The notes below the pieces were generated by a model. It was given only the letters and a program-made list of their open reading frames with translations, was not told where the DNA came from and searched no databases. Below, one piece after another: positions 1 through 30,917 of a DNA stretch of 64,000 nucleotides. A program made the translations under genes and the position numbers. Source of the DNA: Phyllobates terribilis. Lineage: Eukaryota. Positions within the stretch are counted from its first letter, which is position 1, and each line of letters starts with the position of its first letter. The stretch covers positions 716,038,001 through 716,102,000 of the forward strand of contig NW_027362762.1 in the NCBI RefSeq assembly GCF_046119375.1, given 5' to 3'.

Positions 1-918
1 TTAACCTCCGCTAGAGCCTAAAATTAAGGGGAACCCCACGCCAATTTTTTTAATAATAAATCCTTTATTTTAATACTAAATGACAAGTACAGTAACCAAC
101 ACTATCACTGTACTTCATATATATGTGACTGACATGTTTCTATCTATTTAATCTATGTGTGAAGCTCTATTCTGTCTGTTATAAATTGTCGGGTACCGCT
201 GCTGAATTGCCGGCCGGCTTTTTTAAAGAGACGGTGCATGAAAACACTATTATTTTTTTTGATAAATCCTTTACGCTAAATGACAAGTAGAGTAAGCAGC
301 ACTGTCACTGTACTTCATATATATGTGACTGACATGTTTCTATCTATCTAATCTATGTGTGATTCTCTATTCTTTCTATTCTAAATTGTCAGGTACCGCT
401 GCTGAATTGCCGGCCGGCTTTTTTAAAGAGACGGTGCATGAAAACACTATTATTTTTTTTGATAAATCCTTTACGCTAAATGACAAGTACAGTAAGCAGC
501 ACTTTCACTGTACTTCGTATATATGTGGCTGACATGTTTATATCTATCTAATCTATGTGTGAAGCTCTATTCTTTCGGTTCTAAATTGTCGGGTACAGGT
601 GTATGCCGCTGCTGAATTGCCGGCTTTTCATGTTTCACTGTTGGCACTGTTCCCATCGATTTGGGCAATCACTGTAATGTCACAACCACCATGGCTGTGG
701 CATTACAGTGAGTGGCAGACAATCCCTGCATGATTGGTGCTCTAAATAGCACCAGACATGCAGGACACGCTTTTGGTGCACGAACAGTTATCGAACATAA
801 CCTCGAACAGCCGAATTTTTTGCAAATCGTTCGGGTTCGTCGAACAACTCGAACACCGCCCAAAACAGCTCGAATTTGAGATTGGCGAACAGTTCTAGTC
901 GAACACCGCTCATCTCTA
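1..918 (-). mobile_element. Terminal part of a non-autonomous hAT element (third copy of the 7311-12828 family); runs off the window start
   Basis: Collinear with 12111-12828 but with three rather than two 200-bp units. Ends in TIR ...gaacaccgctcatctcta at 918, followed by ttcacgac and then mid-transposase sequence of another hAT. Confidence 0.9.
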
Positions 919-4630: not shown

Positions 4631-5199
4631 CAGGCATTGAATTTCCTCCTAATTTTAGTCAGCTGTTGCTTTTCAATGCATAGGCGAACACTAAGGGAGA
4701 CCCACTCCCCAATAATGGGTAGAAGGTTTTTAGCATGCTGTAATCCACGTCTGTTTCAAGGGGCATTGCAGTTCCTCATAATTTTTGGAAAGCCTTCCAT
4801 TCACTGCTTAGGCCAACAGTGCACAGGAGACCCAGTTGCTATAAATGGAAAAAACGGTTTAGTTAAGGCCCTCTGACCTCCATGTCACTTCCAACATTTT
4901 TGGTATGCATTGCACTCACTGTATGCCCTATAACTGTGTAGCCGAACCGCTCCTTTTGGTACAGAAACATATCCAACAAGACATGTGTGGTTGACTGGCC
5001 AGATATTGATGTGAATGGTCCCTGTTCCTCCTGCTCTTTCTCCTATGCCACCAACTCATCCATCATTCATCACCTGAAGCTTTGTTTTAATAGGAGTCAT
5101 AGAACTGGGATAGTAGCAGGAAAACATCCAGCAATCCTCGGAGGAGGTAGGATATGCGCCAAAGCGCTGACCACCTCAGGCCTAGCCGCTACTTCATAC

Positions 5200-6228
5200 A
5201 TGCGCTTGCATTCCAAGAAAACAAAGCAGATGCTAGCTTCTATCATCATCATCATGCTCCTCACCTTGGCACTCTCAACTCCCCTGATGGAGAAGCCAGG
5301 GCCCACCGGAGGAGTCTGATTCTCTGGTGCGCTCGTCCAATGCTGCCCTAAAGCAGGCCAGGCTAAGAAAAGTGTGGGGGAAGTTGACAGGAGAAATAGG
5401 GGTGGCTGGGGATCGTTTATGGACACCCGGCCGCCCCTAGGCGGCTGGGGACCGTGTGTGGACACCCGGCCGCGGGGCAGCTAGGGACCGAGTATGGACA
5501 CCCAGCCGCCCCCTGGCAGCTGGGGACCGAGCGAGGACACCCGGGCGCCGGGCGGCTGGGGACTGAGTATGGATACCAGGCCACCAAAGCAGCCATTATG
5601 TGGTGGCCGGCGTCTGCCTCCACATGCCTAAAAGGCCCAATTTGAAGTGCAAGCAAGCTAGCAGTATGGTATTGCAGCCTGGGGGTGGGTGGGTGGCAGG
5701 TTGCACACTTACGCTTGCATTCAAAGAAAACAAAGCAGATGCTAACTTCTATCATCATCAACATGCTCCTCACCTTGGCACTCTCAACTCCCCTCATGGA
5801 GAAGCCAGGGCCCACTGGAGGAGTCTAGTTCTCTGGTGGGCTCGTCCAATGCTGCCCTAAAGCTTGCCAGGCTAAGAAAAGTGTGGGGGAAGTTGACAGG
5901 AGAAATAGGGGTGGCTGGGGACCGTTTATGGACACCCGGCCGCCCCCAGGCGGCTGGGGACCGTGTGTGGACACCCCGCCGCGGGGCGGCTGGGGACCGA
6001 GTATGGACACCTGGCCGCCCCCTCGCGGCTGGGGACCGAGCGTTGACACCCGGCCGCTGGGCGGCTGGGTACTGAGTATGGATACCTCGCAGCCGAAGCA
6101 GCCATGAGGTAGTGGCCAGCTTCAGCCTCCTCCTAACTAAAAGGCCCCATTTCAAGTGCAAACTAGCAGTATGGTATTGCAGTCTAGGGGTGGGTGGGTG
6201 GCAGGCTGCATACTTGTGCTTGCATTGC
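5200..6228 (+). repeat. ~510-bp tandem duplication, each copy holding a 39-bp GC-rich minisatellite
   Basis: cgcttgcatt at 5203 and 5712. Unit ggacacccggccgcccctaggcggctggggaccgtgtgt repeated at about 5420-5580 and 5930-6085. Confidence 0.85.
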
Positions 6229-7310
6229 AAGGAATGGGGGAGATACAATTGAACACTGCCCTGGGACAAGGACTTGAACGGGGATAGTTGCAAGTCTGCA
6301 TCTTCTGATGCGGCAAGGATCACTTCTGATGGGCACACTTTTAGGCAGTGACCTGGGTGTCAGAGATGCTTCCAGAGGTCTTCTCCGTGCTGTTCCCATG
6401 TCTTTTCAGCACTGTATGCATGTGTCACACAGCACATGGCCAGATAAGATTGTAAAATGTTAAAATGACATTTCCCGGTGAATGCATTTGTCACGGTTGA
6501 AAGCAATACAAAAGTGCAAAAACGCATAAAAAATGCTACTTGTGAACATAGCCCAAGGTGTGGAAGAGTATTTTTGTTTTTGGGTATTTATTTTACCTTA
6601 TACACAAGTCTTTACCCTGGAAAGGAAGTTCCTTAACATATTTCACAGGAAAACCGTTTCAGTTTAGTTTTTGAACAATTTATTGTAAGCCCGTAAAAGT
6701 GGCTTAATACCTCTGACCACGTTGTTGACAGCAGTGACCTGGGAGTCATAAATGCTTCCTGGGGCGATACCCATGCTCTTCCCATGTCATTTGAACACTG
6801 TCACTATCGTTTTTGGCACTTTTTAGGCTTTCTACAGACTGCCGGGGGTGCCGCCGCAAAAATGCTCGGGTCTCCCATAGACTAACATTGGGCTCGTTGC
6901 TCTGGTCGAGCACCCGAGTATCACGGTGAGCTGGGCCCGAGCTTCGAGCACCCGAGCATTTTAGTGCTCGCTCAACACTACTCACAAACCATTGCTCCTG
7001 GAGAGTCTGCCAGCACAGTCAGCACTCAAGTGCGGACAGAACATCGCAGACACATTTTCAATCTACCTACACAGGGATGCTGAAACTCTGTGTAACCCTA
7101 CCTAAAACAACATGTGACTTGCAGCATACAGAATGCAGAGTGGTAGGGTAGGGTGACCAAGGCTCTGTGCTCTACCGCAATGCCTAATTGTATCGGCTGC
7201 TGCCTGCTGCTACAGATATAAGTGGTGGTTGCTGTGAGTGGGCCCCACAATGTGAGTGGACCAGGGGCACTGCCTTTTTGGGGAAGCGAGCCCAGTTTAT
7301 TCCTCTTAAC

Positions 7311-10300
7311 TAGTGTTGAGCCACCCCCGTAGTGTTCGGGTTCGGTTCGGTTCGTCGAACACCGGGATGTTCGAGGAACTGTTCGTCGAACTGTTCGTCG
7401 AACACCTTAGAACACCGTCGAACACCGTTAAAACCAATGGCAGGCAAACAAAAACACATAGAAACACATAGAAAACACCTGCAAAGGTGTCCAAAAGCTG
7501 ACAAACTGCTCAGAAGACACTCTGTTTAAAAAAGCCGGCCGGCAAATTCAGCAGCGGCATACACCGGTACCCGACAATTTAGACAAGAAGGAATAGAGCA
7601 TCACACATAGATTAGATAGATAGAAACATGTCAGTCAAACATATAAGAAGCACAGTGACAGTGTTGGTTACTGCATTTGTCATTTAGTGTAAAGGATTTA
7701 TTAAAAAAAATATTAGTGTTTTCATGCACCGTCTCTTTAAAAAAGCCGGCCGGCAATTCAGCATCTGTACCCGACAATTTAGAACAGAAAGAATAGAGCT
7801 TCACACATAGATTAGATAGATAGAAACATGTCAGTCACATATAAGAAGCACAGTGACAGTGTTGCTTACTGTACTTGTCATTTAGTGTAAAGGATTTATT
7901 TAAAAAAATAATAGTGTTTTCATGCACTGTCTCTTTAAAAAAGCCGGCCGGCAATTCAGCAGCGGTACCCGACAATTTAGAACAGAAAGATAGAGCATCA
8001 CACATAGATTAGATAGATAGAAACATGTCAGTCACATATATATGAAGTACAGTGATAGTGTTGGTTACTGTACTTGTCATTTAGTATTAAAATAAAGGAT
8101 TTATTATTAAAAAAATTGGCGTGGGGTTCCCCTTAATTTTAGGCTCTAGCGGAGGTTAAGCAGACGGCTGGGGCAGATGTTTGAAGCCTGGGAAGGGGGT
8201 AATACCCACGGAGCTTCCCAGGCTACTAATATCAGCCCCCAGCTGAATACATAGCCTTTACTAGCTATTAAAATGGGGGTCCCCCCCAAAAAAATGACGT
8301 GGGGTCCCCCCTAATTTAATAGCTAGCAAAGGCTAGGCAGACAGCTGAGGGCTGATATTAATAGCCCAGGAAGGGAGCCATGAATATTGGCCCCCTCCCA
8401 GGCTAGAAACACCAGCCGTCAGCCGCCCCAGAAATGGCGCATTCATAGGATGCGCCAATTCTGGCACTTAGCCTCGCTCTTCCACGCTGCCCTGGTGCGG
8501 TGGCAGGGGGTAATAGGGTTGGGGTTGATGTCAGCTTATAATGCCAGCTGACATCAAGCCCAGGTTAGTAATGGAGAGGCGTCTATAAGACACCCCCATT
8601 ACTAACCCCATAGTCAAAGTTAAAAAAAACACAAACACCCAGAATAAAGTCCTTTAATTGAAATAAAGACACAATCCTTTATTGTTCTAAATTAAACCAT
8701 ACCTACCATCACGCCCATTCCAGCTGAAGCCAACGATCTCCTGCAATAAAAGAAAAATAATAAAGCAACCTCATCCTTACCTTTCCATGGTTCCCACGAC
8801 AGCTTCAGCTCTGCTACATCGAGATGACAGGCTGGACCGCAGCAGAACGCCGCCATCCAGCCTGTCATCCCGCAGACACTGAGAAGCGCAGGCTTGCTTG
8901 CGCTGCTCAGCGTCTCTCTGTGACGACATCCAGATGAGCCGAGTTCATGTCCAATGAACTCGGCTCACCTCATGCACGTCACTGACAGCGTGGGAAAATT
9001 CTCACGCTGAAGCGCTGATTGCAGGAGAATTTTCCCACGCTGTCAGTGACGTGCAGGAGGTGAGCTGAGTTCATTGGACATGAGCTCACCTCATGCACAT
9101 CACTGACAGCGTGGGAGAATTCTCCTGCAATCAGCGCTTCAGCGTGAGAATTTTCCCACGCTGTCAGTGACGTGCATGAGGTGAGCCGAGTTCATTGGAC
9201 ATGAACTCGGCTCATCTGGATGTCGTCACAGAGAGACGCTGAGCAGCGCAAGCAAGCCTGCGCTTCTCAGTGTCTGCGGGATGACAGACTGGATGGCAGC
9301 GTTCTGCTGCGGTCCAGCCAGTCATCTCGATGTAGCAGAGCTGAAGCTGTCGTGGGAACCATGGAAAGGTAAGGATGAGGTTGGTTTATTATTTTTCTTT
9401 TATTGCAGGAGATCGTTGGCTTCAGCTGGAATGGGTGTGATGGTAAGTATGGTTTAATTTAGAACAATAAACAATTGTGTCTTTATTTCAATTAAAGGAC
9501 TTTATTCTGGGTGTTGTGTTTTTTTTAAATACTTTACTAGAAATTCATGGCGGTCATGTCTAATACTGGCGTGACCCCATGAATTTTGGGCTTGGGGCCA
9601 GCTGATAATACCAAGCTGGCCCTAACCCCTTTATTACCCAGTGAGCCACCGCACCAGGGCCCTGGATGAGTTGGGTACAGCGCCAGAAGATGGCGCTTCT
9701 ATGAACGCGCCATTTTCCGGGGTGGCTGCGGACTGCAATTTGTAGCGGGGGGGGGCCCAGAAAGCTTGGGCCTCCCTGCGCTGCAGATTCCAGCCCCCAG
9801 CTGCCTAGTTGTACCTGGCTGGACACAAAAATAGGGCGAAGCCCCACGTACTTTTTTTTTAATTATTTCATGAATTTCATGAAATAATTAAGAAAAAAAG
9901 GCCTTCCCTATATTGTTGTGTCCGGCCAGGTACAAATAGGCAGCTGGTGGTTGGGGGCAGCCCGTTCCTGCCTGCTGTACCTGGCTGGACACAAATATAG
10001 TGCGAAGCCCCACTTCAATTTTTTTAAATTATTTCAGGAAATTCATGAAATAATTTAAAAAAAATTGACGTGGGGCTTCGCACTATATTTGTGTCCAGCC
10101 AGGTACAGCAGGCAGGAACGGGCTGCCCCCAACCACCAGCTGCCTATTTGTACCTGGCCGGACACAACAATATAGGGAAGGCCTTTTTTTCTTAATTATT
10201 TCATGAAATTCATGAAATAATTAAAAAAAAAGTACGTGGGGCTTCGCCCTATTTTTGTGTCCAGCCAGGTACAACTAGGCAGCTGGGGGCTGGAATCTGC

Positions 10301-12828
10301 AGCGCAGGGAGGCCCAAGCTTTCTGGGCCCCCCCCCCGCTACAAATTGCAGTCCGCAGCCACCCCGGAAAATGGCGCGTTCATAGAAGCGCCATCTTCTG
10401 GCGCTGTACCCAACTCATCCAGGGCCCTGGTGCGGTGGCTCACTGGGTAATAAAGGGGTTAGGGCCAGCTTGGCATTATCAGCTGGCCCTAATCCCGAAA
10501 TTCATGGGGTCACGCCAATATTAGACATGACCACCATGAATTTCTAGTAAAGTATTTTAAAAAAAACACAACACCCAGAAAAAAGTCCTTTAATTGAAAT
10601 AAACACACAATTCTTTATTGTTCTAAATTAAACCATACTTACCATCACGCCCATTCCAGCTGAAGCCAACGATCTCCTGAAATAAAAGAAAAATAATAAA
10701 GCAACATCATCCTTACCTTTCCATGGTTCCCATGACAGCTTCAGCTCTGCTACATCGAGATGACAGGCTGGACCGCAGCAGAACGCTGCCATCCAGCCTC
10801 TCATCCCGCAGACACTGAGAAGCGCAGGCTTGCTTGCGCTCCACAGTGTCTCTCTGTGAGGGCATCCAGATGAGCCGAGTTAATGTCCAATGAACTCGGC
10901 TCACCTCATGCACGTCACTGACAGCGTGGGAAAATTCTCCTGCACTCAGCGCTTCAGCGTGGGAGAATTCTCACGCTGAAGCGCTGAGTGCAGGAGAATT
11001 CTCCCACGCTGTCAGTGACGTGCAGGAGGTGAGCTGAGTTCATTGGACATGAGCTCACCTTATGCACGTCACTGACAGCGTGGGAAAATTCTCCTGCACT
11101 CAGCGCTTCAGCGTGGGAGAATTCTCACGCTGAAGCGCTGAGTGCAGGAGAATTCTCCCACGCTGTCAGTGAAGTGCAGGAGGTGAGCTGAGTTCATTGG
11201 ACATGAGCTCACCTTATGCACGTCACTGACAGCGTGGGAGAATTCTCCTGCACTCACCGCTTCAGCGTGAGAATTTTCCCACGCTGTCAGTGACGTGCAT
11301 GAGGTGAGCCGAGTTCATTGGACATGAACTCGGCTCATCTGGATGTCGTCACAGAGAGACGCTGAGCAGCGCAAGCAAGCCTGCGCTTCTCAATGTCTGC
11401 GGGATGAGAGGCTGGATGGCAGCGTTCTGCTGCGGTCCAGCCTGTCATCTCGATGTAGCAGAGCTGAAGCTGTCGTGGGAACCATGGAAAGGTAAGGATG
11501 AGGTTGCTTTATTATTTTTCTTTTATTGCAGGAGATCGTTGGCTTCAGCTGGAATGGGCGTGACAGTAAGTATGGTTTAATTTAGAACAATAAAGGATTG
11601 TGTCTATTTCAATTAAAGGACTTTATTCTGGGTGTTTGTGTTTTTTTTAACTTTGACTATGGGGTTAGTAATGGGGGTGTCTTATAGACGCCTCTCCATT
11701 ACTAACCTGGGCTTGATGTCAGCTGGCATTATAAGCTGACATCAACCCCAACCCTATTACCCCCTGCCACCGCACCAGGGCAGCGTGGAAGAGCGAGGCT
11801 AAGTGCCAGAATTAGCGCATCCTATGAATGCGCCATTTCTGGGGCGGCTGACGGCTGGTGTTTCTAGCCTGGGAGGGGGCCAATATTCATGGCTCCCTTC
11901 CTGGGCTATTAATATCAGCCCCCAGCTGTCTGCCTAGCCTTTGCTAGCTATTAAATTAGGGGGGACCCCACGTCATTTTTTTGGGGGTGTCCCCCATTTT
12001 AATAGCTAGTAAAGGCTATGTATTCAGCTGGGGGCTGATATTAGTAGCCTGGGAAGCTCCGTGGGTATTACCCCCTTCCCAGGCTTCAAACATCTGCCCC
12101 AGCCTTCTGCTTAACCTCCGCTAGAGCCTAAAATTAAGGGGAACCCAACGCCAATTTTTTTAATAATAAATCCTTTATTTTAATACTAAATGACAAGTAC
12201 AGTAACCAACACTATCACTGTACTTCGTATATATGTGGCTGACATGTTTCTATCTATCTAATCTATGTGTGAAGCTCTATTCTGTCTGTTATAAATTGTC
12301 GGGTACAGATGCTGAATTGCCGGCCGGCTTTTTTAAAGAGACGGTGCATGAAAACACTATTATTTTTTTTGATAAATCCTTTACGCTAAATGACAAGTAC
12401 AGTAAGCAGCACTGTCACTGTACTTCGTATATATGTGGCTGACATGTTTCTATCTATCTAATCTATGTGTGAAGCTCTATTCTTTCGGTTCTAAATTGTC
12501 GGGTACAGGTGTATGCCGCTGCTGAATTGCCGGCTTTTCATGTTTCACTGTTGGCACTGTTCCCATCGATTTGGGCAACCACTGTAATGCCACAACCACC
12601 ATGGCTGTGGCATTACAGTGAGTGGCAGACAATCCCTGCATGATTGGTGCTTTAAATAGCGCCAGACATGCAGGACACGCTTTTGGTGCACGAACAGTTA
12701 TCGAACATAACCTCGAACAGCCGAATTTTTTGCAAATCGTTCGGGTTCGTGGAACAACTCGAACACCGCCCAAAACAGCTCGAATTTGAGATTGGCGAAC
12801 AGTTCTAGTCGAACACCGCTCATCTCTA
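7311..12828 (-). mobile_element. 5.5-kb non-autonomous, palindromic (foldback-like) hAT element with 8-bp TSD
   Basis: Imperfect TIRs tagtgttgagc... and ...gctcatctcta. Perfect TSD ctcttaac at 7303-7310 and 12829-12836. 7311-7525 matches the reverse complement of ~34850-35065; the last ~150 bp match the reverse complement of 24297-24445. The interior ~7530-12538 is an inverted repeat centred on 10041. Confidence 0.95.
7526..8110. repeat. Three ~200-bp tandem units in the element arm; homologous units at 76-630, 12170-12520 and 13145-13500
   Basis: ctaaatgacaag recurs at 76, 276 and 476; the same unit appears inverted here. Confidence 0.85.
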
Positions 12829-12836
12829 CTCTTAAC

Positions 12837-15651
12837 TAGAGATGAGCGGTGTTCGACTAGAACTGTTCGCCAATCTCAAATTCGAGCTGTTTTGGGCGGT
12901 GTTCGAGTTGTTCCACGAACCCGAACGATTTGCAAAAAATTCGGCTGTTCGAGGTTATGTTCGATAACTGTTCGTGCACCAAAAGCGTGTCCTGCATGTC
13001 TGGCGCTATTTAAAGCACCAATCATGCAGGGATTGTCTGCCACTCACTGTAATGCCACAGCCATGGTGGTTGTGGCATTACAGTGGTTGCCCAAATCGAT
13101 GGGAACAGTGCCAACAGTGAAACATGAAAAGCCGGCAATTCAGCAGCGGCATACACCTGTACCCGACAATTTAGAACCGAAAGAATAGAGCTTCACACAT
13201 AGATTAGATAGATAGAAACATGTCAGCCACATATATACGAAGTACAGTGACAGTGCTGCTTACTGTACTTGTCATTTAGCGTAAAGGATTTATCAAAAAA
13301 AATAATAGTGTTTTCATGCACCGTCTCTTTAAAAAAGCCGGCCGGCAATTCAGCAGCGGTACCCGACAATTTATAACAGACAGAATAGAGCTTCACACAT
13401 AGATTAGATAGATAGAAACATGTCAGCCACATATATACGAAGTACAGTGATAGTGTTGGTTACTGTACTTGTCATTTAGTATTAAAATAAAGGATTTATT
13501 ATTAAAAAAATTGGCGTTGGGTTCCCCTTAATTTTAGGCTCTAGCGGAGGTTAAGCAGACGGCTGGGGCAGATGTTTGAAGCCTGGGAAGGGGGTAATAC
13601 CCACGGAGCTTCCCAGGCTACTAATATCAGCCCCCAGCTGAATACATAGCCTTTACTAGCTATTAAAATGGGGGACACCCCAAAAAAAATGACGTGGGGT
13701 CCCCCCTAATTTAATAGCTAGCAAAGGCTAGGCAGACAGCTGGGGGCTGATATTAATAGCCCAGGAAGGGAGCCATGAATATTGGCCCCCTCCCAGGCTA
13801 GAAACACCAGCCGTCAGCCGCCCCAGAAATGGCGCATTCATAGGATGCGCTAATTCTGGCACTTAGCCTCGCTCTTCCACGCTGCCCTGGTGCGGTGGCA
13901 GGGGGTAATAGGGTTGGGGTTGATGTCAGCTTATAATGCCAGCTGACATCAAGCCCAGGTTAGTAATGGAGAGGCGTCTATAAGACACCCCCATTACTAA
14001 CCCCATAGTCAAAGTTAAAAAAAACACAAACACCCAGAATAAAGTCCTTTAATTGAAATAAAGACACAATCCTTTATTGTTCTAAATTAAACCATACTTA
14101 CTGTCACGCCCATTCCAGCTGAAGCCAACGATCTCCTGCAATAAAAGAAAAATAATAAAGCAACCTCATCCTTACCTTTCCATGGTTCCCACGACAGCTT
14201 CAGCTCTGCTACATCGAGATGACAGGCTGGACCGCAGCAGAACGCTGCCATCCAGCCTCTCATCCCGCAGACATTGAGAAGCGCAGGCTTGCTTGCGCTG
14301 CTCAGCGTCTCTCTGTGACGACATCCAGATGAGCCGAGTTCATGTCCAATGAACTCGGCTCACCTCATGCACGTCACTGACAGCGTGGGAAAATTCTCAC
14401 GCTGAAGCGGTGAGTGCAGGAGAATTCTCCCACGCTGTCAGTGACGTGCATAAGGTGAGCTCATGTCCAATGAACTCAGCTCACCTCCTGCACTTCACTG
14501 ACAGCGTGGGAGAATTCTCCTGCACTCAGCGCTTCAGCGTGAGAATTCTCCCACGCTGAAGCGCTGAGTGCAGGAGAATTTTCCCACGCTGTCAGTGACG
14601 TGCATAAGGTGAGCTCATGTCCAATGAACTCAGCTCACCTCCTGCACGTCACTGACAGCGTGGGAGAATTCTCCTGCACTCAGCGCTTCAGCGTGAGAAT
14701 TCTCCCACGCTGAAGCGCTGAGTGCAGGAGAATTTTCCCACGCTGTCAGTGACGTGCATGAGGTGAGCCGAGTTCATTGGACATTAACTCGGCTCATCTG
14801 GATGCCCTCACAGAGAGACACTGTGGAGCGCAAGCAAGCCTGCGCTTCTCAGTGTCTGCGGGATGAGAGGCTGGATGGCAGCGTTCTGCTGCGGTCCAGC
14901 CTGTCATCTCGATGTAGCAGAGCTGAAGCTGTCATGGGAACCATGGAAAGGTAAGGATGATGTTGCTTTATTATTTTTCTTTTATTTCAGGAGATCGTTG
15001 GCTTCAGCTGGAATGGGCGTGATGGTAAGTATGGTTTAATTTAGAACAATAAAGAATTGTGTGTTTATTTCAATTAAAGGACTTTTTTCTGGGTGTTGTG
15101 TTTTTTTTAAAATACTTTACTAGAAATTCATGGTGGTCATGTCTAATATTGGCGTGACCCCATGAATTTCGGGATTAGGGCCAGCTGATAATGCCAAGCT
15201 GGCCCTAACCCCTTTATTACCCAGTGAGCCACCGCACCAGGGCCCTGGATGAGTTGGGTACAGCGCCAGAAGATGGCGCTTCTATGAACGCGCCATTTTC
15301 CGGGGTGGCTGCGGACTGCAATTTGTAGCGGGGGGGGGCCCAGAAAGCTTGGGCCTCCCTGCGCTGCAGATTCCAGCCCCCAGCTGCCTAGTTGTACCTG
15401 GCTGGACACAAAAATAGGGCGAAGCCCCACGTACTTTTTTTTTAATTATTTCATGAATTTCATGAAATAATTAAGAAAAAAAGGCCTTCCCTATATTGTT
15501 GTGTCCGGCCAGGTACAAATAGGCAGCTGGTGGTTGGGGGCAGCCCGTTCCTGCCTGCTGTACCTGGCTGGACACAAATATAGTGCGAAGCCCCACGTCA
15601 ATTTTTTTAAATTATTTCATGAATTTCCTGAAATAATTTAAAAAAATTGAA
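12837..15651 (+). mobile_element. Inverted, truncated copy of the 7311-12828 element (mirror of ~10015-12828)
   Basis: Starts with TIR tagagatgagcgg straight after the TSD. Mirrored ORFs have coordinate sums of 25665/25667 (12477-12773 vs 12892-13188; 10713-10913 vs 14754-14954). Homology stops at 15651. Confidence 0.95.
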
Positions 15652-18600
15652 TCTAATCATTGTCATCATCTTTAGGTCAATGAAAATCTGTAGTGATCTA
15701 TGCCTATTTCATTTTGACAAATGTAAGTTTTGCCAAATGTGTAGAGAACAATGTGGTCCACTTGGGAATGACAAAGTCACCTGCTGAATACTCTCTTGAC
15801 ACAGTACAGTATGCTGAAAGCCAGAAAACTGAATCAGTTCTTGCCACTGGTCTAATCTGCTTACTCAAAAGTCCATAGGGTCTTGGCTTAGGGTATCTTC
15901 TAGAGAAAAGACACATTCCAGTTGTGTTGTGAGTCTGATTGTACAGATTTGCATTTCTGTTTGCTGATCTGCGTTAGCTTGGAGCAATGGCTGAAAAATA
16001 TCTTGTCTCACCAGAGATCTCCTGGTGAGACATGTGGCTGCATGGCATCTGCTCATCAAAAGTTTTGCTGAGCAAGAAATACAGCTGATCTAGGTAATGT
16101 GCCAGTTTTGACACCCAATTTTATTTTTTTTCTTTTCCAGGTAGAAGGGAGAGGGGAGAAAACAAAACCACAGAAACGAAAAATTGTCTGGTCCTAAAGG
16201 GGTGAGAGGAGCTTAGCTACGAAACCAAATGGCCAGATGTGATGCTGTTTTTGGAAGAATTCAGCCATTTTTTCAAGATACTGGACAGCCCTTTGAAGCA
16301 GAAATATAGTATAAGAAAATTCATCTTCCTAGCAGAATTTAATTAAATCTGGTGTAAGACATAAGATTGAATATATATTGTATATTACAAACTGAAACAC
16401 TTGAATACAGCTATGTGAAATACTTGCTAGACCATTAATAGCAAACCTAAGTCCAATAAGTTCCATGTTTAGATGTTGAAGGATCAACCTACCCAGTGAG
16501 ACGTACAGTCATCCCAAATTTTTACATTTTATGCTATTTGAGCTTTGTATCAGATTTATGTTCCCTAGAAATTGCTTAGTACATTATAAAGTATGAATTC
16601 ATTTTAATGTACTTCACAGAAAATCAGCCTGGATTTGAGAGCATGTTGTGAATTTTAAAATCTTCAGTATGCTCTATTCTGTTGTAGATTTTGTGCAGGT
16701 TTTACCTACTGTATTGTGAAAAGTGAAATCTGCAAAAATGGACATAGCAATATACTCTATAGTCGGGAACAAATCTTATGAAATATTAATTTGATGGCTT
16801 CGCTGATTTTTCCCAGTGAATTTGATTTACAGGGAATCATTTTTCCATGAATCTCAAAGCTTTTCTCTGATTGTCCTGAGAAAAGGCGTATAGCACTTGT
16901 AAGTTTCCTAAGACTGTGCTGAACTTTTTTTGGGCTGTGTGCAAACACAGACTTAATAATATCCAGTCTCCCTCAATGTATCTATCTGGATGAAAAGGAA
17001 GGTAACCTGATTTTTTAAATTTATGCATTAATTTATTTTTTTAAAACTTTCTCCCCTTGCCAAAAACTGTAATGCAACCCTAAGATGTGATGTTACTAGG
17101 TAGGTATGTGCTTAAAAAATAATTTGCATCAACAGTATTGTTGTGGCACATCCACTCGTTAAATTTAATTATTAAACCAGTTGTAAAACCTTAACCTCTT
17201 TTTATTTTATTTAATTTTTAAGGTATCTTTTCTATGAAGAAAAATGTAAAGTAACCAAAAATAATACTTTGCAAATCAGGTACACGTAGGTTCGCACCTG
17301 GAACTGAAAATACAGCAGCAGCGTGCTGTATGGTTGATACGATTAATAAATTGGACTATCAAAGCAGGTATAAAAAAAATGTAAATGTCCATCATGTAAA
17401 CGATTTAAAAATAAATATAATTGCACCACAGTACTTTCCAAAAAAATAACGGGACAAGAAAAGCTGGTTAGCCTTACGTCCCAAAAGCAATCACCCGCAT
17501 CAGATCACTGTATCAGGGTGGCATGTATGGTTTAAACATTGGACTTCTATAACAAAGAAGTATGCAATAACTTTTATCAACACGCAGTTTGCAAGATATA
17601 TAGCTGATTTTAAATTTTTAAATTCTTGGGATTTGTAATTTGTGCATATGCATATATGTACATGGTTTCACAGTCTATTACACACAAGCCTAGTTTCCAT
17701 AATTCTTCTTTATTAGCAAAATTAGGATGACGGGAACGAAACCGCCCTTTTGGTTTGTAGTTGCAGTGTGTAAAGATTTTAAAAATGCTGTTATTAAGGT
17801 GTTGTTAACCGCTTCCCGACCGCCCACTGTACATAAACGTCGGCGCTGCCTGGGCTCTGTGCAGCGCTGACGTTTATGAACAGTCGGTGGTCCCGCAGCC
17901 CTCAGGACCACCAGCGTCCTGCAAGTGCTGCGGTTGCGGTTCAGAGCGACAGCTCTGACAGGGGACATCATCGGGACCTGATAGGATCAGGTCCCAATGA
18001 TGTTAACACTTTGCTATCTTCTATATGCCGCGATCTATAGTGATCGCAGCATATAGAAGATAGTGAGAGGAGAGGGGGTCGTCCACTTACCTTTCCGACG
18101 GCCCCCTGATGTCTTCCAGGACCTGCCATTGTTATGGCAGCTGGAGGTCACATGACCGCCTCCAGATCTGCCATATATGGTGTCCTGCTGAGCTCAGCCT
18201 GCAACTGAGTCCAGCAGGAGACAGTGTGAAACTGTAAGCAAAGTTCTCATGCAATGTCTTTTGCATTGCATGAGAACAATGATTAGAAAATAAAAATTAA
18301 TGTCCCATACAGGGACTAATTAAAAATGTAAAAAAAAGTCTAAAAAATGTTTTCAAAGTGTTAAAAAAAATCCCCAAATAAATAAAAATAAATTAATAAA
18401 ATATTAAACCAATAAATCCGTATATTTATGCAAAAACAAAAAAAGTACACATATTTGGTATCGCCGCATCCGAAACAACCGATCTATAAAACGTTCACAC
18501 TAATTAACTCCTTCTGCGCACACCGTAATAAAAATAAATAAAAAATGGAGCAAAAAACTATGCTTTTTCATCATATTTCCAAACAAAAAGTGGAAAAAAA

Positions 18601-19476: not shown

Positions 19477-22262
19477 CTAAGCATAAGATGTAATATTATT
19501 GTTCTCAAGAAAGGCGTCCAGGCCTCTCTTGAACTCATTAAGTGAGTTGGACATCACCACTTCCTCTCCCAGAGAGTTCCAGAGTCTCACGGCTCTGACC
19601 GTAAAGAATCCCCTTCTATGCTGGTGCAGGAACCTCCTTTCCTCCAGACGCATAGTGTGCCCCTTCGTCTTTGTCACCATCCTTGGTATAAACAGGTCAT
19701 GGGAGAGATCTCTGTACTGCCCCCTGATGTATTTATACATGTTTATGAGGTCTCCCCTAAGCCTTCTCTTTTCCAACGTAAATAGGCCTAATTTTGACAA
19801 CCTCTCTGAGTATTCTAGTCCCTCCATTCCCTTTATTACCTTAGTCGCTCTACTTTGTACCCTCTCTAGCTCCAATATGTCTTTCCTGAGCACCGGAGCC
19901 CAGAACTGTGCACAATATTCTAAGTGCGGCCTTACCAGCGCTTTATACAGAGGAAGAACAATGTTCTCATCATATGCCCCTATTCCTCTTCTGATGCATG
20001 CCATGACTCTATTTGCCTTTGCAGCTGCTGCCTGACACTGGGCACTCCAATTTAATTTGCTATTAACCAAGTCGCCCAGGTCCTTCTCCATGTCAGATTT
20101 CCCCAACGGTTTCCCATTTAATATGTATGGGTGACTGCTGTTTTTCTTTCCCATGTGCATGACCTTACATTTATCGGCATTGAACCCCATTTGCCATTTT
20201 TTGGCCCAACTCCCCAATTTATCTAAATCCTCCTGCAGCTGTGCCCTATCCTCATCTGTATTAACTACTTTACAAAGTTTAGTATCATCTGCAAATATTG
20301 CTATTTTACTATGCAACCCTTCCACTAGATCATTAATAAATATATTAAATAATATAGGGACCAAGACAGACACTTGAGGCACCCCGCTAGTAACCCTGAC
20401 ACACCCTGAGCTTACTCCATTGATAACCACCCTCTGCTTTCTATCACTCAGCCAGCTATTTACCCACTTGCACACATTATCCCCCAGACCAAGCATTCTC
20501 ATTTTAAATACCAACCTTTTGTGTGGCATGGTATCAAACGCTTTGGAGAAGTCAAGGTATACAACATCCACTGACTCTCCCCGGTCCAGCTGTGAGCTCA
20601 CCTCCTCGTAAAAGGCGATCAGGTTTGTTTGGCAGGAGCGATCCCTCATGAATCCATGTTGATATGGAGTTAGACAGTTATTATCATTAAGATATTCTAC
20701 AATAGCATCTCTAAGAAATCCTTCAAACAATTTACCCACAAGAGACGTTAAGCTGACTGGTCTATAGTTCCCAGGGTCACTTTTAGACCCCTTTTTGAAT
20801 ATTGGTACCACATTTGCTTGGCGCCAGTCTAGTGGGACAGTCCCTGTCCATAAAGAGTGCTTGAATATAAGATACAGCGGTCTGTCTATCACATTACTTA
20901 ATTCTTTTAGTACCCGGGGGTGTATGCCATCTGGGCCTGGTGACTTGTCTATTTTGATATTATTTAGGTGTTTCTGAACTTCCTCCTGGGTTAGGTGGGT
21001 GATATTTAGCGGAGGGTTTACTTTATCACTCTGCATTTCCTCCGATAAATTGTTTTCTTTTGTGAAAACAGTGGAGAAGAAGCTATTGAGTAGGTTTGCT
21101 TTACCCTCTTCGCCCTCTATGATTTTACCCAGGTTATTTTTCAATGGACCAACTCCATCAGTTTTAATCCTTTTACTGTTTATATAGTTAAAGAACAGTT
21201 TGGGATTCGTTTTACTTTCCTTGGCAATTAGTCTCTCTGTCTCCTCGTCTCCTCTTTTGCTATTCTTATTTGTTTCTTACAGATTTTGTTTTTTTCCCTA
21301 TAAGATATTAGCGCATCCTCGCTGCCTTCTTGTTTAAGTTTACCGAAAGCCCTTTTTTTGTTTTTCATTGCCCTCTTGACTTCCTTATTTAGCTACATTG
21401 GCTTCCTCCTATTCCTAGCCCTTTTATTCCCATAAGGTATGTACCTTCTACAGTGACTATGTAGGACTGTTTTGAAAATTTCCCATTTTCTATCCGTGCT
21501 CCTATTACTTAAGATACTATCCCAGTCTATAAGGTGAAGGGCATCTCTTAGCTGATCAAATTTTGCCCTCCTGAAGTTCAGTGTTTTTGTGACTCCCTTG
21601 CTGGGCACCCTACTGAAGCACATGTGGAATTGTATAATGTTGTGGTCACTATTTCCCAGGTGCCCTCCGACCTGCACCTCAGTTATTCTGTCTGGCCTGT
21701 TAGTTAATATTAAGTCTAAAAGGGCCGTCCCTCTAGTTGTTTCCTGCACAAGTTGTGACAAATAATTGTCTTTGATAATTGACAGAAACCTGTTTCCTTT
21801 CTGAGATCTACAGCTTTCGGTTTCCCAGTCTATATCGGGGTAGTTAAAGTCCCCCATAATAATCACCTCGTTATTTTTTGCTACTTCGTCTATTTGTCTC
21901 ATTAATAGACTTTCCGTGGCTTCTGCTATATTTGGAGGTTTATAACAGACTCCTATGATAATTTTATTATTGTTTTTTGCCCCATGTATCTCCACCCATA
22001 AGGACTCGACCTCCTCATTTCCCTCCCATGCATCCTCCCATATTGTAGGCTTTAGACACGTCTTTACATATAGACAGACTCCACCCCCTTTCCGACTTCT
22101 TCGATCCCTTCTAAACAGACTGTAACCCTGTAAGTTAACTGCCCAGTCATAGCTTTCATCTAACCATGTCTCGGTTATTCCCACTATGTCATAGTTACCT
22201 GTAGATATTTCTGCTTCCAGTTCATGCATCTTGTTTGTCAGGCTCTTGGCATTTGCTAGCAT
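19477..22262 (-). pseudogene. CR1 ORF2 (APE endonuclease + reverse transcriptase), disrupted
   Basis: APE motifs GITETW, GDFNYPDI, LDLILTN, SDH in 21393-22262; RT motifs YRPVSL, LDFSKAFD, FADDTK in 19477-21144. Visible lesions are a TAG stop at 21393-21395 and an 8-bp duplication at 21239-21254. Confidence 0.95.
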
Positions 22263-23880: not shown

Positions 23881-25145
23881 TTAGCTTCAATCCCTGGATT
23901 TGTTTATTATGTCTCCCAAAGATCGCAGTAAGGCTCTGCTTATCCTGAGATCTGCGCTGAGCACTTACACCAGAGTTTCCATGTAAATATCTGAAATAGA
24001 TCAAATCAGATGGAACCCATGACGGAAGAATCCCTTTAATGTGGCAGATATAGGCCACTGTGGATGCCATCTGGCCTGTGATCCCACTGTGTCAGTTTTT
24101 TTAGGCGTGCAAAAAAGTGCGGTTGACCACAGTTTTGTGCACTTCTGAAAAAAAGAACACCGCTAAATAGAGGCCAGACGGAGTCCAGAGAATCTCTGCT
24201 GCCTCATTACAGTGAATGGATCCTGCAGGGGTTTCATCTGAATTACATCACTTGGAAATTTAGATGGAAACCCCGATGTAAGTGCTCAGTCTAGAGTAGA
24301 GATGAGCGTTGTTCGACTCGAACTGTTCGCCAGTCTCAAATTCGAGCTGTTTTGGGCGGTGTTCGAGCCGTTTGGCAAACACGAACGATTTGAGAAAAAT
24401 TCGGCTGTTCGAGGTTATCTTCGATAAGTGTTCGTGCACCAAAATCATAACTGGATTTTTTCTCAGTAATGATGAAAATTAATGTTAATCCGCAGTTTGA
24501 GTGTACAGCGGGGCGGGGGGAGGGGCAGGGGATGGATCTCTGCAGGAATAATGAAGATCTCCATTTTTTTTTCTCTTTCCCGCATTTACAGTGGGGAGGT
24601 GCAATCTGTCAGCCTATCAGCAGCGCACACACGGAGCGAAGTGCTTTTTTTCACACAAGCAAGGGCATGTGTCATTGGCAGTGTATGTCACATGTCCTTG
24701 CCCTATAAGACCAAGCCATTTTCCCCGTCGCCACCATTTTCTCACTGCTGCAGCTGAGTGTTAGACGACACCGCTGTTGCTGTGTTAATTTGATTGTTAA
24801 TTTCAAGCCAATTTTCGCACAAATCTACAGATAGCTTGGGAGTAGGGAATAGTTGTGATTGCAGTCCTTTTAAGGACTAGGTTACAGCATTTCCTACAAC
24901 TTTTATCAGGCAGGTCTGTGCTCTTAAATAGATAGGTTGTGGGAGTAAAGACTAATTGTAATTGCAGTCCTTTTCAGGACTAGGTTACATCAGTTCCTAT
25001 CAGTTTTTGCCAGGCAGGTCTGTGCCAGTGCTGTGCAAGTTTTTTTCACAGCGTTTGGCTGAATCTAGCAAAGCTAATCCTTTTCGGCCTATTGCAGAGT
25101 GTGTTAGTCAGTGGAGTAGCCTATCTGTTTTGCAAGACATACCAC

Positions 25146-26580
25146 CTCTGAAAAAATATTTGGGCTTCTAGCAGTGTGTGGGATTTGTTCTATTAGTTCA
25201 TCTATACTGACCTCCATCAGGTTGCAAACTGAATATAATTTTTTTCTGCATCTAGCTCTGATAAAATATTTGGGCTTCTAGCAGTGTGTGGGACTTGTTC
25301 TATTAGTCCATCTATACTGACCTCCATCACGTTGCAAATTCAAAATAATTTTTTTCTGCATCTAGCTCTGAAAAAATATTTGGCCTTCTAGCAGTGTGTG
25401 GGACTTTCTCTATTAGTTCATCTATACTGACCTCCATCAGGTTGCAAATTAAAAATTATTTTTATCTGCATCTACCTCTGAAAAAATATTTGGGCTTCTA
25501 GCTGTGTGTGGGACTTGTTCTATTAGTCCATCTATACTGACCTCCATCAGGTTGCAAACTGAATATAATTTTTTTCTGCATCTAGCTCTGAAAAAATATT
25601 TGGCCTTCTAGCAGTTTGTGGGACTTTCTCTATTAGTCCATCTATACTGACCTTCATCAGGTTGCAAATTAAAAATAATTTTTATCTGCATCTAGCTCTG
25701 AAAAAATATTTGGCCTTCTAGCAGTGTGTGGGACTTGTTCTATTAGTCCATCTATACTGACCTCCATCACGTTGCAAATTCAAAATAATTTTTTGTCTGC
25801 ATCCAGCTCAGAAAAAATATTTGGCCTTCTAGCAGTGTGTGGGACTTTCTCTATTAGTCCATCTATACTGACCTCCATCAGGTTGCAAATTAAAAATATT
25901 TTTTATCTGCATCTAGCTCTGAAAAAATATTTGGCCTACTAGCAGTGTGTGGGACTTTCTCTATTAGTCCATCTATACTGACCTCCATCAGGTTGCAAAT
26001 TAAAAATAATTTTTATCTGCATCTAGCTCTGAAAAAATATTTGGCCTTCTAGCAGTGTGTGGGACTTTCTCTATTAGTCCATCTATACTGACCTCCATCA
26101 GGTTGCAAATTAAAAATAATTTTTATCTGCATCTAGCTCTGAAAAAATTTTGGCCTTGTAGCAGTGTGTGGGACTTTCTCTATTAGTCCATCTATACTGA
26201 CCTCCATCAGGTTGCAAATTAAAAATAATTTTTTGTCTGCATCTAGCTCTGAAAAAATATTTGGCCTTCTAGCATTGTGTGGGACTTTCTCTATTAGTCC
26301 ATCTTTACTGACCTCCATTAGGTTGCCAACTGAATATATTTTTTTTCTGCATCTACCTCTGAAAAAATATTTGGGCTTCTAGCTGTGTGTGGGACTTGTT
26401 CTATTAGTCCATCTATACTGACCTCCATCACGTTGCAAATTCAAAATAATTTTTTGTCTGCATCTAGCTCTGAAAAAATATTTGGCCTCCTAGCAGTGTG
26501 TGGGACTTGTTCTATTAGTTCATCTATGCTGACCTCCGTCAGGTTGCAAATTGAATATAATTTTTTTCTGAATCTAACCC
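25146..26580 (+). repeat. 110-bp tandem array, about 13 copies, upstream of the transposase
   Basis: ctctga recurs at 25146, 25256 and 25366; repeated ORF translations are offset by 440 and 661 bp. Confidence 0.95.
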
Positions 26581-26674
26581 AGTCAATAGTTTTGGCCTAA
26601 TACCACAGTTTGGCCACTCAGCTCTGCTCGGTTCCCATCCATTGTTTTTTTGTGCAAATTAGTTAACCACCAAA

Positions 26675-29600
26675 ATGAGGGGAAAAAGGCCTGCTGCTGG
26701 TGGAAAGGGGAATAGGCGTGTTGGGAAGGGGAAAAAATGTTGTGTCCATGGGGTAGGTGTTAAAGCAACAGTAACATCTGCAGAAGAAAGACCATCTTCC
26801 AGCCAAACTAAAATGTCTACTTCTTTTAGCGGACAATGTGATAAGATCCCTTTCTTACGGCCACACAAATCGCTACAAATTCCAGATGAGGCAAAAAAAC
26901 AGCAGGTGCTTCAACGGATATCAAGTGTTCCTTTAAGTGGGCTCTCCTCCACATCAACTTCAACATCACAAATACTCCAGTCCTCAAAAGTGTCACCCCA
27001 ATTGCACTTGCTTCCTCACAGCTCCCAAATCTCCAGCTGCCCGTCTGAGTATGAGGTAGAACAGATGGTTGAGTCTGCAGAGCAGTTTACTCATACTATA
27101 GCCTGGGAATCAGAGGTCGGCTCCAGCGCTTCTGTGAATCCAGACGAGGAAATGATCTGCACTGATGCCCAGAATCTTTATGAGTCAGATCCAGGACCAG
27201 ACGCTGAAGGTTCTGACCATAATGTAGACCCTCATTCCCAAACTGTAACTCCTGTTGGTGGAGACAATGAGGAAGACGATGATGAGACTCAAATACCTGA
27301 TTGGAGTGACAACTTTAGTTTTTTGTCAGGGCAGGAACAGGTTGGCTCTGAGGACGACGGGTGTGATAACACAGGGTGATGATGATGAGGTTGGAGATCC
27401 CACTTACTGTCAACCCACAGTCAGCCAAGAGATGAGGTCAGCAGAGGAGGTGGAGGAGAATGCTAGTGACAACGAGGTCAGGTTGCGCCTTCCTGGACAG
27501 AGACGTAGTATTGGAAGCACGTCAACAACAGCATCCTCAAACACAACTCTGCCTCTCACCACAAGTCGTGGTGGCCCTTCAGGTCGCATGGGTGCTAAGC
27601 CTTGCATAGCCTGGGCATTTTTTCAGATCGATAAAATGACCCAACTCGTGTTATCTGTAACATTTGTCAGCAAAAGCTAAGTAGAGGCCAAAAAATACAT
27701 AGTTTGAGTACTTCCTGCATGAACCGGCACACGGACATGAAGCATAAGTTGCAGTGGGAAGCTCACTGTGCTACAATGCGGCCTAGCCAGCCGGGCCAAC
27801 CACCGTCTGCCATATCTTGTGCATCCGTGGCCTCTTCATCCTCTGTGACTGGGGGGACAGCAGTCACATCTGTTTTGGGGCGCAGACCTGCCACCTCTTT
27901 ACCCGCAACAGCCAGCGTGATTGGCAGGTCATCATTTTCTTTGGAGGTGGTAACACCAGCTGGTGTTGAGCGCTGTCCGACATTGATAGCACCACCTTTG
28001 GATCAAGGCAACCTAACATGTCCGCCTGCATCTTCCTCACAGACCGGCAGTTTGCCGGGGACACCCTTATCAACCCCGTCTAAGCACAATAGCCAGCACT
28101 CGGTCCCTCAGATGTGGACAAGTAAAAGACCATTTCCTCCTAGCCATGAGAAAGCTAAGAGGTTGAATTTCACCATCTGCAAGCTCTTGGCTACAGAAAT
28201 GCTGCCTTTCCGCCTGGCGGACACAGAGGATTTTCGAGACCTTATGTCCGTCGCAGTGCTCCAGTACCAGATGCCGAGTCGGCACTACTTCTCAAAGAAA
28301 GCTGTGCCTGCGCTCCACCAGCATGTCGCACACAACATTACCGCTTCTTTGAGAAACTCTGTGTGTGACCGGGTGCATTTCACCACAGACACTTGGACGA
28401 GTAGGCATGGACAGGGGCGTTACATGTCGCTGACTGGGCACTGGGTAACTATGGTTACAGCAGGACAAGGGGCTGCTGTCCAAGTCTTGCGGTCCCCACG
28501 AGTTGTGCGTCAATCCTCTTTATCTCAAAGTTCCTCCACTGTTTCTGCCTCCTCAACCTCCTCTCGGTCCTCCACCTGCACCCAAAGCTTGTCTGGTCAT
28601 GCCACAAGCTTTCTAACTGCGCAGAAGGGATCCTGCACACCTCCTTACTATGCTGGCAGTAGGGCTTAACGTCATCAGGCGGTTTTTACTTTGAAATGTC
28701 TGGGAAATGTGAGTCACACAGCTGAGGAGTTGTGGTCAGCTCTGGAGAACCAATTTCATGAATGGTTGTCTCCACTGGACCTGAAACCAGGGAAGGCCGT
28801 GTGCGACAATGTTGCAAACCTGGGTGCGGCCCTTCGCCTTGGCAATGTCACACACGTGCCTTGTATGGCTCACTTGTTGAACCTGGTTGTCCAGCAATTT
28901 TTAGCCCACTATCCCGGACTAGATGGCCTTCTGCAGAGGGCACTGTCGCTGTGTGCTCACTTCCGCCGTTCGCATCCCGCAGCTCAGCGACTTACATCTC
29001 TACAGAAGTCGTTGGGCCTGCCACTTCACCGGCTAAAATGCGATGTGCCTACCCGGTGGAATTCAACTCTGCACATGTTGCAGCGACTGTGGCAGCACCG
29101 ACAAGCCCTCGTGCAATACGTTCTGACGTATAGCCTGGGCCAACGAGATCCAGAGGTGGGGCAATTCACGCTGGAGGAGTGGTCTCAGATCAGGGACCTA
29201 TGCACCCTTCTGCACAGTTTTGAAATGGCGACGAAGATGTTTAGTGCTGACGATGCCATTATCAGCATGACTATTCCGGTGATTTACATGCTGGAGCACA
29301 TGTTAAACAGAATTCGGAGTCAGGTGGTGGCACAAGAGGAGGCGGAGGAAGTAGAGGAGGAGGAGTTGTATACGGAAGGGCTAACATCTGCAAGGTCCAG
29401 ACGGTCGGCAGCACCAAGGCGGCAGGCATGTGAGGGTGGGGGAGATGGTTTTACCAGGGCACATGGTAGCAGCCAAACTAGTAAGGAAGGTGCAGGAGCC
29501 CAGGAAGAAGTGGAGGACGAACTGATGGAAGACTCATCAGATGAGGGAGACCTTGATCACATTTCGGTTGTGCGAGGTTGGGGGGAGAGGACAGAGGAAG

Positions 29601-30391
29601 GAAGCATGATTGATACCTCACCACCAACACAACAGGGACTTGGTGCTCCAGGATGCGCAACACACATGAGTGCCTTCTTGCTGCTCTACCTGCAACATGA
29701 CCCTCGAATTGTGAGAATTAGAAATAATCCTGACTACTGGGTTGCCACACTGTTAGATCCCCGGTACAAATGTAAATTTGCAGAAATTATTCCTGCCATA
29801 GAAAGGGATGCACGCATGCAGGAGTATCAGCAGAGACTGTTGCAGAATCTTACATGTGCTTTTCCACAAAACACCAGTGGTGCACGTAGTGAATCTCACA
29901 GTTCCAACTTGCCAACCGTGGGACCGTCGAGTGTTCAGCACTCAAACCGTAACAGAACCACATTATCTGCTGGTAACATCAATTTTGCGGAATCATTTCA
30001 CCACTTTTTTAGCCCATCCTTTGCAAGGCCACAGGAGACAAGAAGTCTGACAAATAGTCAACGCCTAGAGACAATGGTACAGGAGTATCTCCAAGTAAAC
30101 ATTGAAGCCATGACTGTGTCACTGGACCTTTGCTCTTTTTGGGCTTCCAATCTGGATAAATGGCCGGAGCTAGCCACTTACGCCTTGGATATCTTGTCAT
30201 GCCCCGCCGCCAGCGTTCTGTCTGAACGTGTGTTCAGCGCTGCTGGTGGTGTGCTGACAGGTAAGCGCACGCGGCTCTCCACTGATAATGTAGACAGACT
30301 CAAGCTCATAAAGATGAACAAATCATGGAACGAAATGACTTTTCTACCCCTGTGTCATCCTGGGGAGAGTAAAAGCTTGATGATTGGTTAA
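26675..30391 (+). pseudogene. Long hAT transposase pseudogene with BED-type zinc finger remnant
   Basis: Basic N-terminus, acidic/Ser-rich region, AWAFF...C..C...TSCMNRH...H (BED-like), VHFTTDTWTS, VCDN, HVPCMAHLLNLVV, CDVPTRWNST, LLDPRYK, CPAASVLSERVFSAAG. Frameshifts near 27375 and 27650; in-frame TAA at 28667-28669. Confidence 0.95.
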
Positions 30392-30420
30392 AATCACCTC
30401 ACCAACCGTTTTAAGCTTTC

Positions 30421-30790
30421 AAATTACTAATCATGTTTATCTGTATCTTGGCTGTAAAATAATTTGTGCTTTGTAGCAGTGGGCAGCACTGATTCTATTA
30501 GGCCATCTATAATAAGCTCCACCAGATTTAAAATGACTAATCATGTTTATCTGTATCTTGGCTGGAAAATAATTTGGGCTTTGTAGCAGTGTGCAGTACT
30601 GATTCTATTAGGCCATCTATACTAAGCTCCACCAGATTTAAAATTACTAATCATGTTTATCTGTACCTTGGCTGGAAAATAATTTGGGCTTTGTAGCAGT
30701 GTGCAGCACTGATTCTATTAGGCCATCTATACTAAGCTCCACCAGATTTAAAATTAATAATAATTTTTAGCTGCATCTAGCCCGGAAAAT
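30421..30790 (+). repeat. About three 110-bp tandem units downstream of the transposase, related to the 25146-26580 array
   Basis: Period 110 (30421, 30531, 30641). Shares ttgggct..tagcagtgtg...ttctattag.ccatctatact with the upstream unit. Confidence 0.85.
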
Positions 30791-30917
30791 AATTTTGGGG
30801 CTCCGAGATGCGCAAGACACATAAGTGCCTTCTTGCTGCACTACCTGCAACATGACCCTCATATTGTCAGAATTCGAAGTAATCCTGACTACTGGGTTGC
30901 CACACTCTTAGATCCCC

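Follow-up and report, generated by a model that had tools for sequence, protein, structure and literature searches.

The window analysed here (the whole stretch of 64,000 nucleotides, positions 716,038,001 to 716,102,000 of contig NW_027362762.1 in the Phyllobates terribilis assembly) contains a complete hAT transposon, element E, with the 8-bp target-site duplication CTCTTAAC on both sides, followed immediately by an inverted partial copy of the same element, termed arm 3 (Table 1). Together, the right half of E and arm 3 form a 5.6-kb near-perfect palindrome. The joint between the two transposon ends (junction J2) consists solely of the duplication, and the outer joint between arm 3 and unique DNA (junction J3) lies inside the element at the foot of a hairpin.

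Table 1. Coordinates of the hAT insertion, its junctions, and its relatives within the window, with the evidence for each feature.
Feature	Position	Strand	Evidence
Another E-type copy, right part only, cut off by the window start	1-918	+	Right end at 918, then TTCACGAC
Left copy of the 8-bp target-site duplication CTCTTAAC	7303-7310	+	Identical to 12829-12836
Element E, complete non-autonomous hAT, 5,518 bp, diverged foldback	7311-12828	+	Ends, duplication on both sides
Left terminal inverted repeat of E, TAGTGTTGAGCC	7311-7322	+	Exact second copy at 35054-35065, minus strand
Inner palindrome of E, 282-nt arms, centre 10041/10042, AT-rich hairpin tip	9747-10336		99% complementary
Right terminal inverted repeat of E, TAGAGATGAGCG, read inward	12817-12828	-	9/12 bases match the left repeat
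Right-hand CTCTTAAC duplication of E, also the loop (8 nt) of the 5.6-kb palindrome (J2)	12829-12836	+	Sequence match, fold
Arm 3, inverted copy of the right 2,815 bp of E (10014-12828)	12837-15651	+	4 substitutions, 3 indels
22-bp AT-rich hairpin, 3' foot at the end of arm 3	15598-15650	+	-18.8 kcal/mol, z -6.2
Junction J3, arm 3 to unique DNA	15650-15652	+	Apparent 2-nt AA overlap, no target duplication
Unique right flank	15652-18500	+	No repeat match within the window; word depth 10-27
10.8-kb relative of E	24297-35065	-	Same 12-bp ends, TAGTGTTGAGCC and TAGAGATGAGCG

A comparison of 10014-15651 with its own reverse complement returned 99.61% identity over 5,642 columns (BLAST), confirming the palindrome that had been proposed in a first-pass annotation of the window, the arm coordinates of which were correct to within 1-3 bases. 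In a global alignment running outward from the junction, the two arms (10014-12828 and 12837-15651) differ by four substitutions (12309/13356, 12307/13358, 12105/13560, and 11983/13682). The remaining differences are indels, one of 2 bp at 14060-14061 (about 11604) and two of 1 bp in homopolymers at 10337 and 10064, and identity collapses past 10014/15651. The handful of differences listed previously were all found, though the two homopolymer indels had been missed. Loop flips would be expected to place differences at the centres of the inner palindromes, and no such coincidence was found among the arm differences. The spacer between the arms, itself non-palindromic, had been equated with the 8-mer at 7303-7310, and the match is exact, the spacer being the target duplication of the element at 7311-12828. 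Within the window CTCTTAAC occurs three times, the third copy (50222) having unrelated neighbours, and the 8 bases past the right end would match the 8 bases before the left end by chance in about 1 in 65,536 cases. As a single strand, J2 is predicted to fold into a perfect hairpin stem with an 8-nt loop.

Arm 3 amounts to 51% of the element and opens with an intact right end directly after the right duplication of E. The order across J2 is right end, CTCTTAAC, and inverted right end, with zero bases lost, such that two intact ends are separated solely by the duplication as in a same-target dimer. At its other side the copy stops inside the element at 15651, 27 nt beyond the centre of the inner palindrome. 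A third duplication or an inverted left end was sought beyond arm 3 and neither was found, the next 8 bases being TCTAATCA, which is not a duplication. The two complete elements and third duplication of a full same-target dimer are consequently not what the locus contains, and its earlier description as a dimer of two elements does not hold: the second copy consists of the right 2,815 bp only, without a left end and without a third duplication. The locus instead combines one transposase joint with one repair joint, the arrangement of a composite insertion, with J2 exact and J3 lacking a duplication at the hairpin foot. Judged from its sequence, J3 appears to bear the marks of a repair joint, including its internal position, the missing duplication, a minimal overlap, and the hairpin foot. 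The contigs of other family copies, from both P. terribilis and a related species, diverge within the same hairpin (at 15602, 15608, 15622, and 15631), which may indicate that its tip breaks repeatedly or is variable across the family.

Rare variants connect the two arms to each other. The base shared by both arms at 12652/13013 represents <1% of the summed family contig depth and that at 13851/11814 represents <5%, with neighbouring copies in the window carrying the common bases at both sites. Because the arms share these rare variants and the remaining family copies reach only about 95% identity, arm 3 appears to derive from E or an immediate sibling and not from a random family member. For three of the four substitutions (the 12307/12309 pair and 12105), the 2-bp indel, and the 10337 indel, both of the arm states are also found in another copy in the window, the exception being the arm 3 base at 13682, which is absent from the one alignable copy. 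Since the differing states mostly recur elsewhere in the family, arm 3 is best viewed as a separate physical copy and not as the same reads assembled twice.

Element E is itself a foldback, with a left half (7311-10041) and a right half (10042-12828) that are 90-96% alike when inverted, and the region around the point where they meet (9990-10095) has a predicted fold of -47.8 kcal/mol (z -16). A search for open reading frames of at least 100 amino acids returned none within E and, because it encodes nothing, E is considered non-autonomous. Both ends are delimited by related copies in the window: the first 210 bp share 90% identity with the left end of the 10.8-kb relative, in a match that starts exactly at 7311, and the right 148-294 bp match the right ends of the 10.8-kb relative (90% over 148 bp) and of the copy at 1-918. 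Exact copies of TAGAGATGAGCG occur at 907-918, 12837-12848, and 24297-24308. E is composed of palindromes nested at several scales, including inverted repeats arranged in tandem with unit lengths of 121, 154, 166, and 198 bp. Outside of ends of roughly 150-210 bp, it has nothing in common with the 10.8-kb autonomous-type copy. The summed contig word depth over the element (12600-15681), which is not a copy number, was 0.6-3.9 million compared to 10-27 in the unique flank across three individuals of P. terribilis, and suggests that this non-autonomous family is among the most abundant repeats of the genome. In a related species (run X9), the element was present at a far lower word depth.

Based on its sequence features, E is a member of the hAT superfamily, the terminal inverted repeats of which begin with YARNG. 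The repeats of E are short and imperfect and follow this pattern with TAGTG/TAGAG ends, and CGAACA/TGTTCG subterminal repeats, putative transposase binding sites, occur 5-7 times per 250-bp end compared to 0.18 times per 250 bp in the window. The family of E is confirmed by the 10.8-kb relative, as it possesses the same ends, its own 8-bp duplication (CTCTAGAC at 24289-24296 and 35066-35073), and a hAT transposase, which is a component of the relative and not of E. The transposase frame (27704-30391, plus strand) has a DTW catalytic-type motif and a single in-frame stop at 28667-28669, and the open reading frame at 28691-30391 matches Dimer_Tnp_hAT in Pfam (PF05699; 1.5e-13), in line with the RNase-H-like catalytic core and C-terminal dimerisation domain by which hAT transposases are recognised. 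Homologues of the frame are BED-finger hAT transposases of frogs that carry a BED finger, PF27039, and PF05699, with the best among them belonging to dendrobatoid and other frogs (68% to Anomaloglossus; also Ranitomeya and Dendrobates). Together, the 8-bp duplications, the ends, and the transposase of the relative bear out the hAT assignment made from the sequence at first inspection. Further, the flanks CTCTTAAC, CTCTAGAC, and TTCACGAC all fit nTnnnnAC, which we take to be the target pattern of hobo and Hermes. Fragments of a Tc1-type helix-turn-helix and a reverse transcriptase lie inside the 10.8-kb relative at 31404-32918.

The interval 12600-16600 is mostly covered by eight public runs from three samples of P. 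terribilis, and contigs from four runs, representing the three samples and one related species, were compared across it. At J2 the abundance of the element swamps such a comparison, leaving only the flank contigs informative, and the 68-nt path through J2, which lies between very high-copy nodes, was probably lost from the cleaned contigs. All of the right-flank contigs begin to fit at 15650. In run X1, from sample S1 (the likely source of the assembly), a 1,430-nt contig (depth 8.5) has 1,072 nt of different sequence to the left of 15650, in run X6 (sample S3) a 713-nt contig has 393 nt of different sequence at the same place, and in run X5 (sample S2) the contig begins exactly at 15650. Because the depth is low, the sequence left of 15650 in X1 and X6 appears to be unique DNA and not an E-family repeat, and these two contigs indicate a second allele, carried by the source animal and by one or more others, in which about 1 kb or more of different unique sequence precedes 15650. 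Contigs of the unique right flank break at the same spots, 16007/16012 in X1 and X6 and 16170/16190 in X5, probably due to heterozygous small variants.

J3 was searched for using the 60 bases centred on the junction, from which two words were sampled. Both words were present only in run X2 (sample S1), neither was present in X1 or X3, and no S2 or S3 run was listed. As X1 covers 15650-16007, the sampled words must span the junction itself. In our reading, J3 exists in the reads of the source animal, this animal is heterozygous, and the structure is undetected in the other two animals. The apparent 2-nt AA overlap at J3 follows from arm identity reaching 15651 and the other allele fitting from 15650, and is what end joining would leave. 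An empty site in which the left flank would run straight into 15650 was considered and rejected, as the duplication ends with AC and the shared sequence starts with AA. The flanks were also examined within the window as pieces of another repeat that could reveal an empty site, and the right flank matched nothing, with the left flank matching a local tandem repeat only. This left flank (5195-6234) holds a roughly 509-bp tandem unit in two copies that are 88-89% alike, with 75-bp sub-repeats.

Several other mobile elements occur in the window. A roughly 507-bp element at 40555-41061 has hAT-like ends (TAGGGATGAGTG and TAGGGATGAGCA) and flanks (TACACCAC and TACACCAT) that match at 7/8 bases, and probably represents a miniature hAT relative from a different family. 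Similar 12-mers also occur at 6980, 41327, 45503, 59186, and 62609. On the minus strand, 19477-22262 contains frames of a long interspersed nuclear element type, an endonuclease (PF03372, 1.5e-17) followed by a reverse transcriptase (PF00078, 1.4e-29), and 57709-58575 contains a fragment of a Tc1/mariner-type transposase (HTH_Tnp_Tc3_2, 7.6e-15).

The reading that is preferred here, tentatively and with less than even confidence, is that a locally derived copy entered the same target in reverse and later lost part of its length in a deletion centred on the hairpin. E would first have inserted into CTCTTAAC in the normal manner, as the flanking duplications show. Another copy, originating from E or from the copy on the sister chromatid, would then have been integrated inverted into the same 8 bp by a hAT transposase to create J2, a step that we infer from the exact end-duplication-end geometry at this junction. 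A transposase-made joint is by far the simplest account of J2, as a random fold-back, whether in vivo or during library preparation, would not coincide with the element end plus the duplication. The expected product, a full tail-to-tail dimer with a palindrome of roughly 11 kb and three duplications, would have been unstable. The second copy would subsequently have broken at its own inner hairpin and rejoined host DNA further to the right with a 2-nt overlap to create J3. In the process, the left part of the copy would presumably have been lost along with the third duplication and about 1 kb or more of host DNA. The end state would be E followed by its right half in inverted form, with the sequenced animal heterozygous for the structure. 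The data show the anatomy of the locus, its family, the duplications, the rare variants common to both arms, the other allele, and the J3 words in one run, whereas the source of the second copy and the sequence of events are inferred.

A reverse second insertion into the same target had been proposed when the palindrome was first described, and the proposal agrees with the geometry of J2 and with the arms being mutual closest relatives. It does not account for the partial copy: a second step, either a deletion or aborted replication, is required because arm 3 is truncated and ends at a repair-type joint at the hairpin. The accompanying suggestion of very recent mobilisation is similarly supported by the close relationship of the arms and by a structure that is apparently polymorphic, though near-identity alone is inconclusive given the potential for arm-to-arm gene conversion; the event is probably recent. 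Several points weigh against an inverted insertion followed by a deletion. The full dimer, the third duplication, and the left end are all absent from the locus, making the first product hypothetical. J2 was seen in no independent read set, and the J3 words, two having been sampled, were found in one of the three listed source-sample runs and in no other individual. Further, the 2-nt overlap and the missing host DNA are deduced from where the alignments start and stop, and two events are needed where alternative transposition would need one.

The main rival, which we consider somewhat unlikely, is a one-step alternative (sister-chromatid) transposition with aborted re-replication. In this scheme, a right end on the sister copy would be ligated by the transposase to the edge of the E duplication, after which a replication fork would copy inward for 2.8 kb, stall at the inner hairpin, and abort, with the broken end fusing further to the right. 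The product would be a "fractured" inverted copy with an adjacent deletion, generated in a single event. That one event would account for the absence of a third duplication, for an arm cut short at a replication barrier, and for the loss of host DNA, with both arms derived from the same element. The anatomy is that of published Ac cases in which a transposase joint on one side and a partial inverted copy that stops at an arbitrary point within the element are accompanied by fused broken ends (bioRxiv 10.1101/2020.01.07.897926), although those cases involve two nearby elements and distant targets and do not show the duplication of the resident element itself serving as the target. The sequence fits a dimer followed by a deletion equally well. 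The dimer-then-deletion route is given more weight than alternative transposition because double insertion with preservation of the duplication has been documented for P and hobo (PMC5932611).

An assembly or library artefact, in which a fold-back chimera or a mis-join created arm 3 and the real locus continues from E into the unique sequence of the other contigs, is regarded as quite improbable. Palindromes are known trouble spots for sequencing, the X1 contigs of the source sample run from 15650 into different unique sequence, the J3 words occur in one run only, and J2 is unconfirmed in reads. The X1 contig is, however, explained equally well by a heterozygous structural variant, and a random fold-back would not hit the element end and the 8-bp duplication exactly. 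Nor would an artefact be expected to yield arms that differ by four substitutions and a 2-bp indel, for which both states mostly recur in the copies of the window, and the J3 words occur in contigs built from reads, with the assembly continuing for 48 kb past the palindrome.

Fold-back repair of breaks is a general mechanism that yields inverted duplications, and a repair event without any transposase would begin with resection of a break in the right flank. The 3' end would then fold back on a few bases of chance complementarity beside the end of E and copy the right half of E until synthesis halted at the hairpin, and would finally be ligated across the break. Such a route would explain the truncation, the deletion, and the overlap at J3, and inverted duplications centred on short inverted repeats are a recognised result of break repair (PMC3315005). 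It is nonetheless very improbable, as the host DNA after the duplication would have to begin by chance with the complement of the last bases of the element (~1 in 64 or less) for the loop to equal the duplication and the arm to begin precisely at the element end, leaving aside why a fold-back should have occurred at that place. Palindrome arms undergo gene conversion, and an old inverted pair homogenised from arm to arm (99.8% identity, as in sex-chromosome palindromes) would suit the paired change at 12307/12309, which has both states in the family and resembles a conversion tract, but is highly improbable given that one or more other individuals apparently lack the structure, that the source animal is apparently heterozygous for it, and that the inner arms of E, a similar distance apart, have diverged to 90-96%.

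The structure is either a truncated dimer or a composite insertion, and not a plain dimer, and both of these kinds are already known. What is new here is the host group, and three details deserve note: the derivation of the second copy from the resident element, the truncation at a hairpin foot, and the apparent segregation of the variant. As a single case the locus is a well-preserved example and introduces no new principle, in which a hAT element in a very large frog genome forms the same-target end-to-end junctions known from P, hobo, and Ac/Ds. The locus further preserves what is likely an intermediate in the decay of a palindrome, with a break at the hairpin foot, the loss of host DNA, and a variant that is apparently still segregating. 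A broader possibility, which we rate as distinctly unlikely, is that this frog hAT family repeatedly reuses the duplication of a resident copy, always tail to tail, and thereby seeds unstable palindromes; this may occur through a transposase at the resident right end that captures a second end, or through sister-chromatid self-targeting. If true, the palindromes would resolve by hairpin-centred deletions that remove host DNA, and this one family would drive structural polymorphism in a giant amphibian genome; a tail-to-tail bias that was general for the family would point to targeting by the resident end. The locus is additionally suited to asking whether long inverted transposon copies feed small-RNA silencing in amphibians.

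Among known systems, the double insertion of P and hobo elements at one target in Drosophila, with the duplication kept in the junction (McGurk and Barbash 2018, PMC5932611), is the precedent that had been invoked for the locus and is documented as described. Head-to-head P dimers are cited there from Tower et al. 1993, and inverted dimers are reported to be rare and probably selected against through cruciform formation (PMC5932611). As in those cases, two copies of one cut-and-paste element lie end to end with an 8-bp duplication between intact ends, and hobo is likewise a hAT element. In contrast to P and hobo, the second copy in the frog is half an element with no outer duplication, the host genome is very large and repeat-rich, and E is an internal foldback.

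The composite insertions of maize Ac, with fractured inverted Ac copies in the "Ac killer" alleles p1-ww-id1 and id4 (bioRxiv 10.1101/2020.01.07.897926), also involve a hAT element and have several features in common with the frog locus: on one side a joint made by the transposase and marked by an 8-bp duplication, an incomplete inverted copy of 2-4 kb leading to a repair joint, and, apparently, a loss or gain of flanking DNA. Whereas the maize events start from two nearby elements and distant sites and produce large flanking duplications, the target in the frog is the duplication of the resident element itself and no host DNA is inverted. For the second joint, the parallel is with deletions through palindrome centre-break or hairpin processing, known in bacteria for interrupted palindromes (PMC3315005). 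In such deletions one end falls at the base of the hairpin at a palindrome centre and the other joint has a minimal overlap. The frog locus resembles these deletions in both respects, and its position at the hairpin foot, from which alone the link is drawn, would be consistent with hairpin processing having shaped J3.

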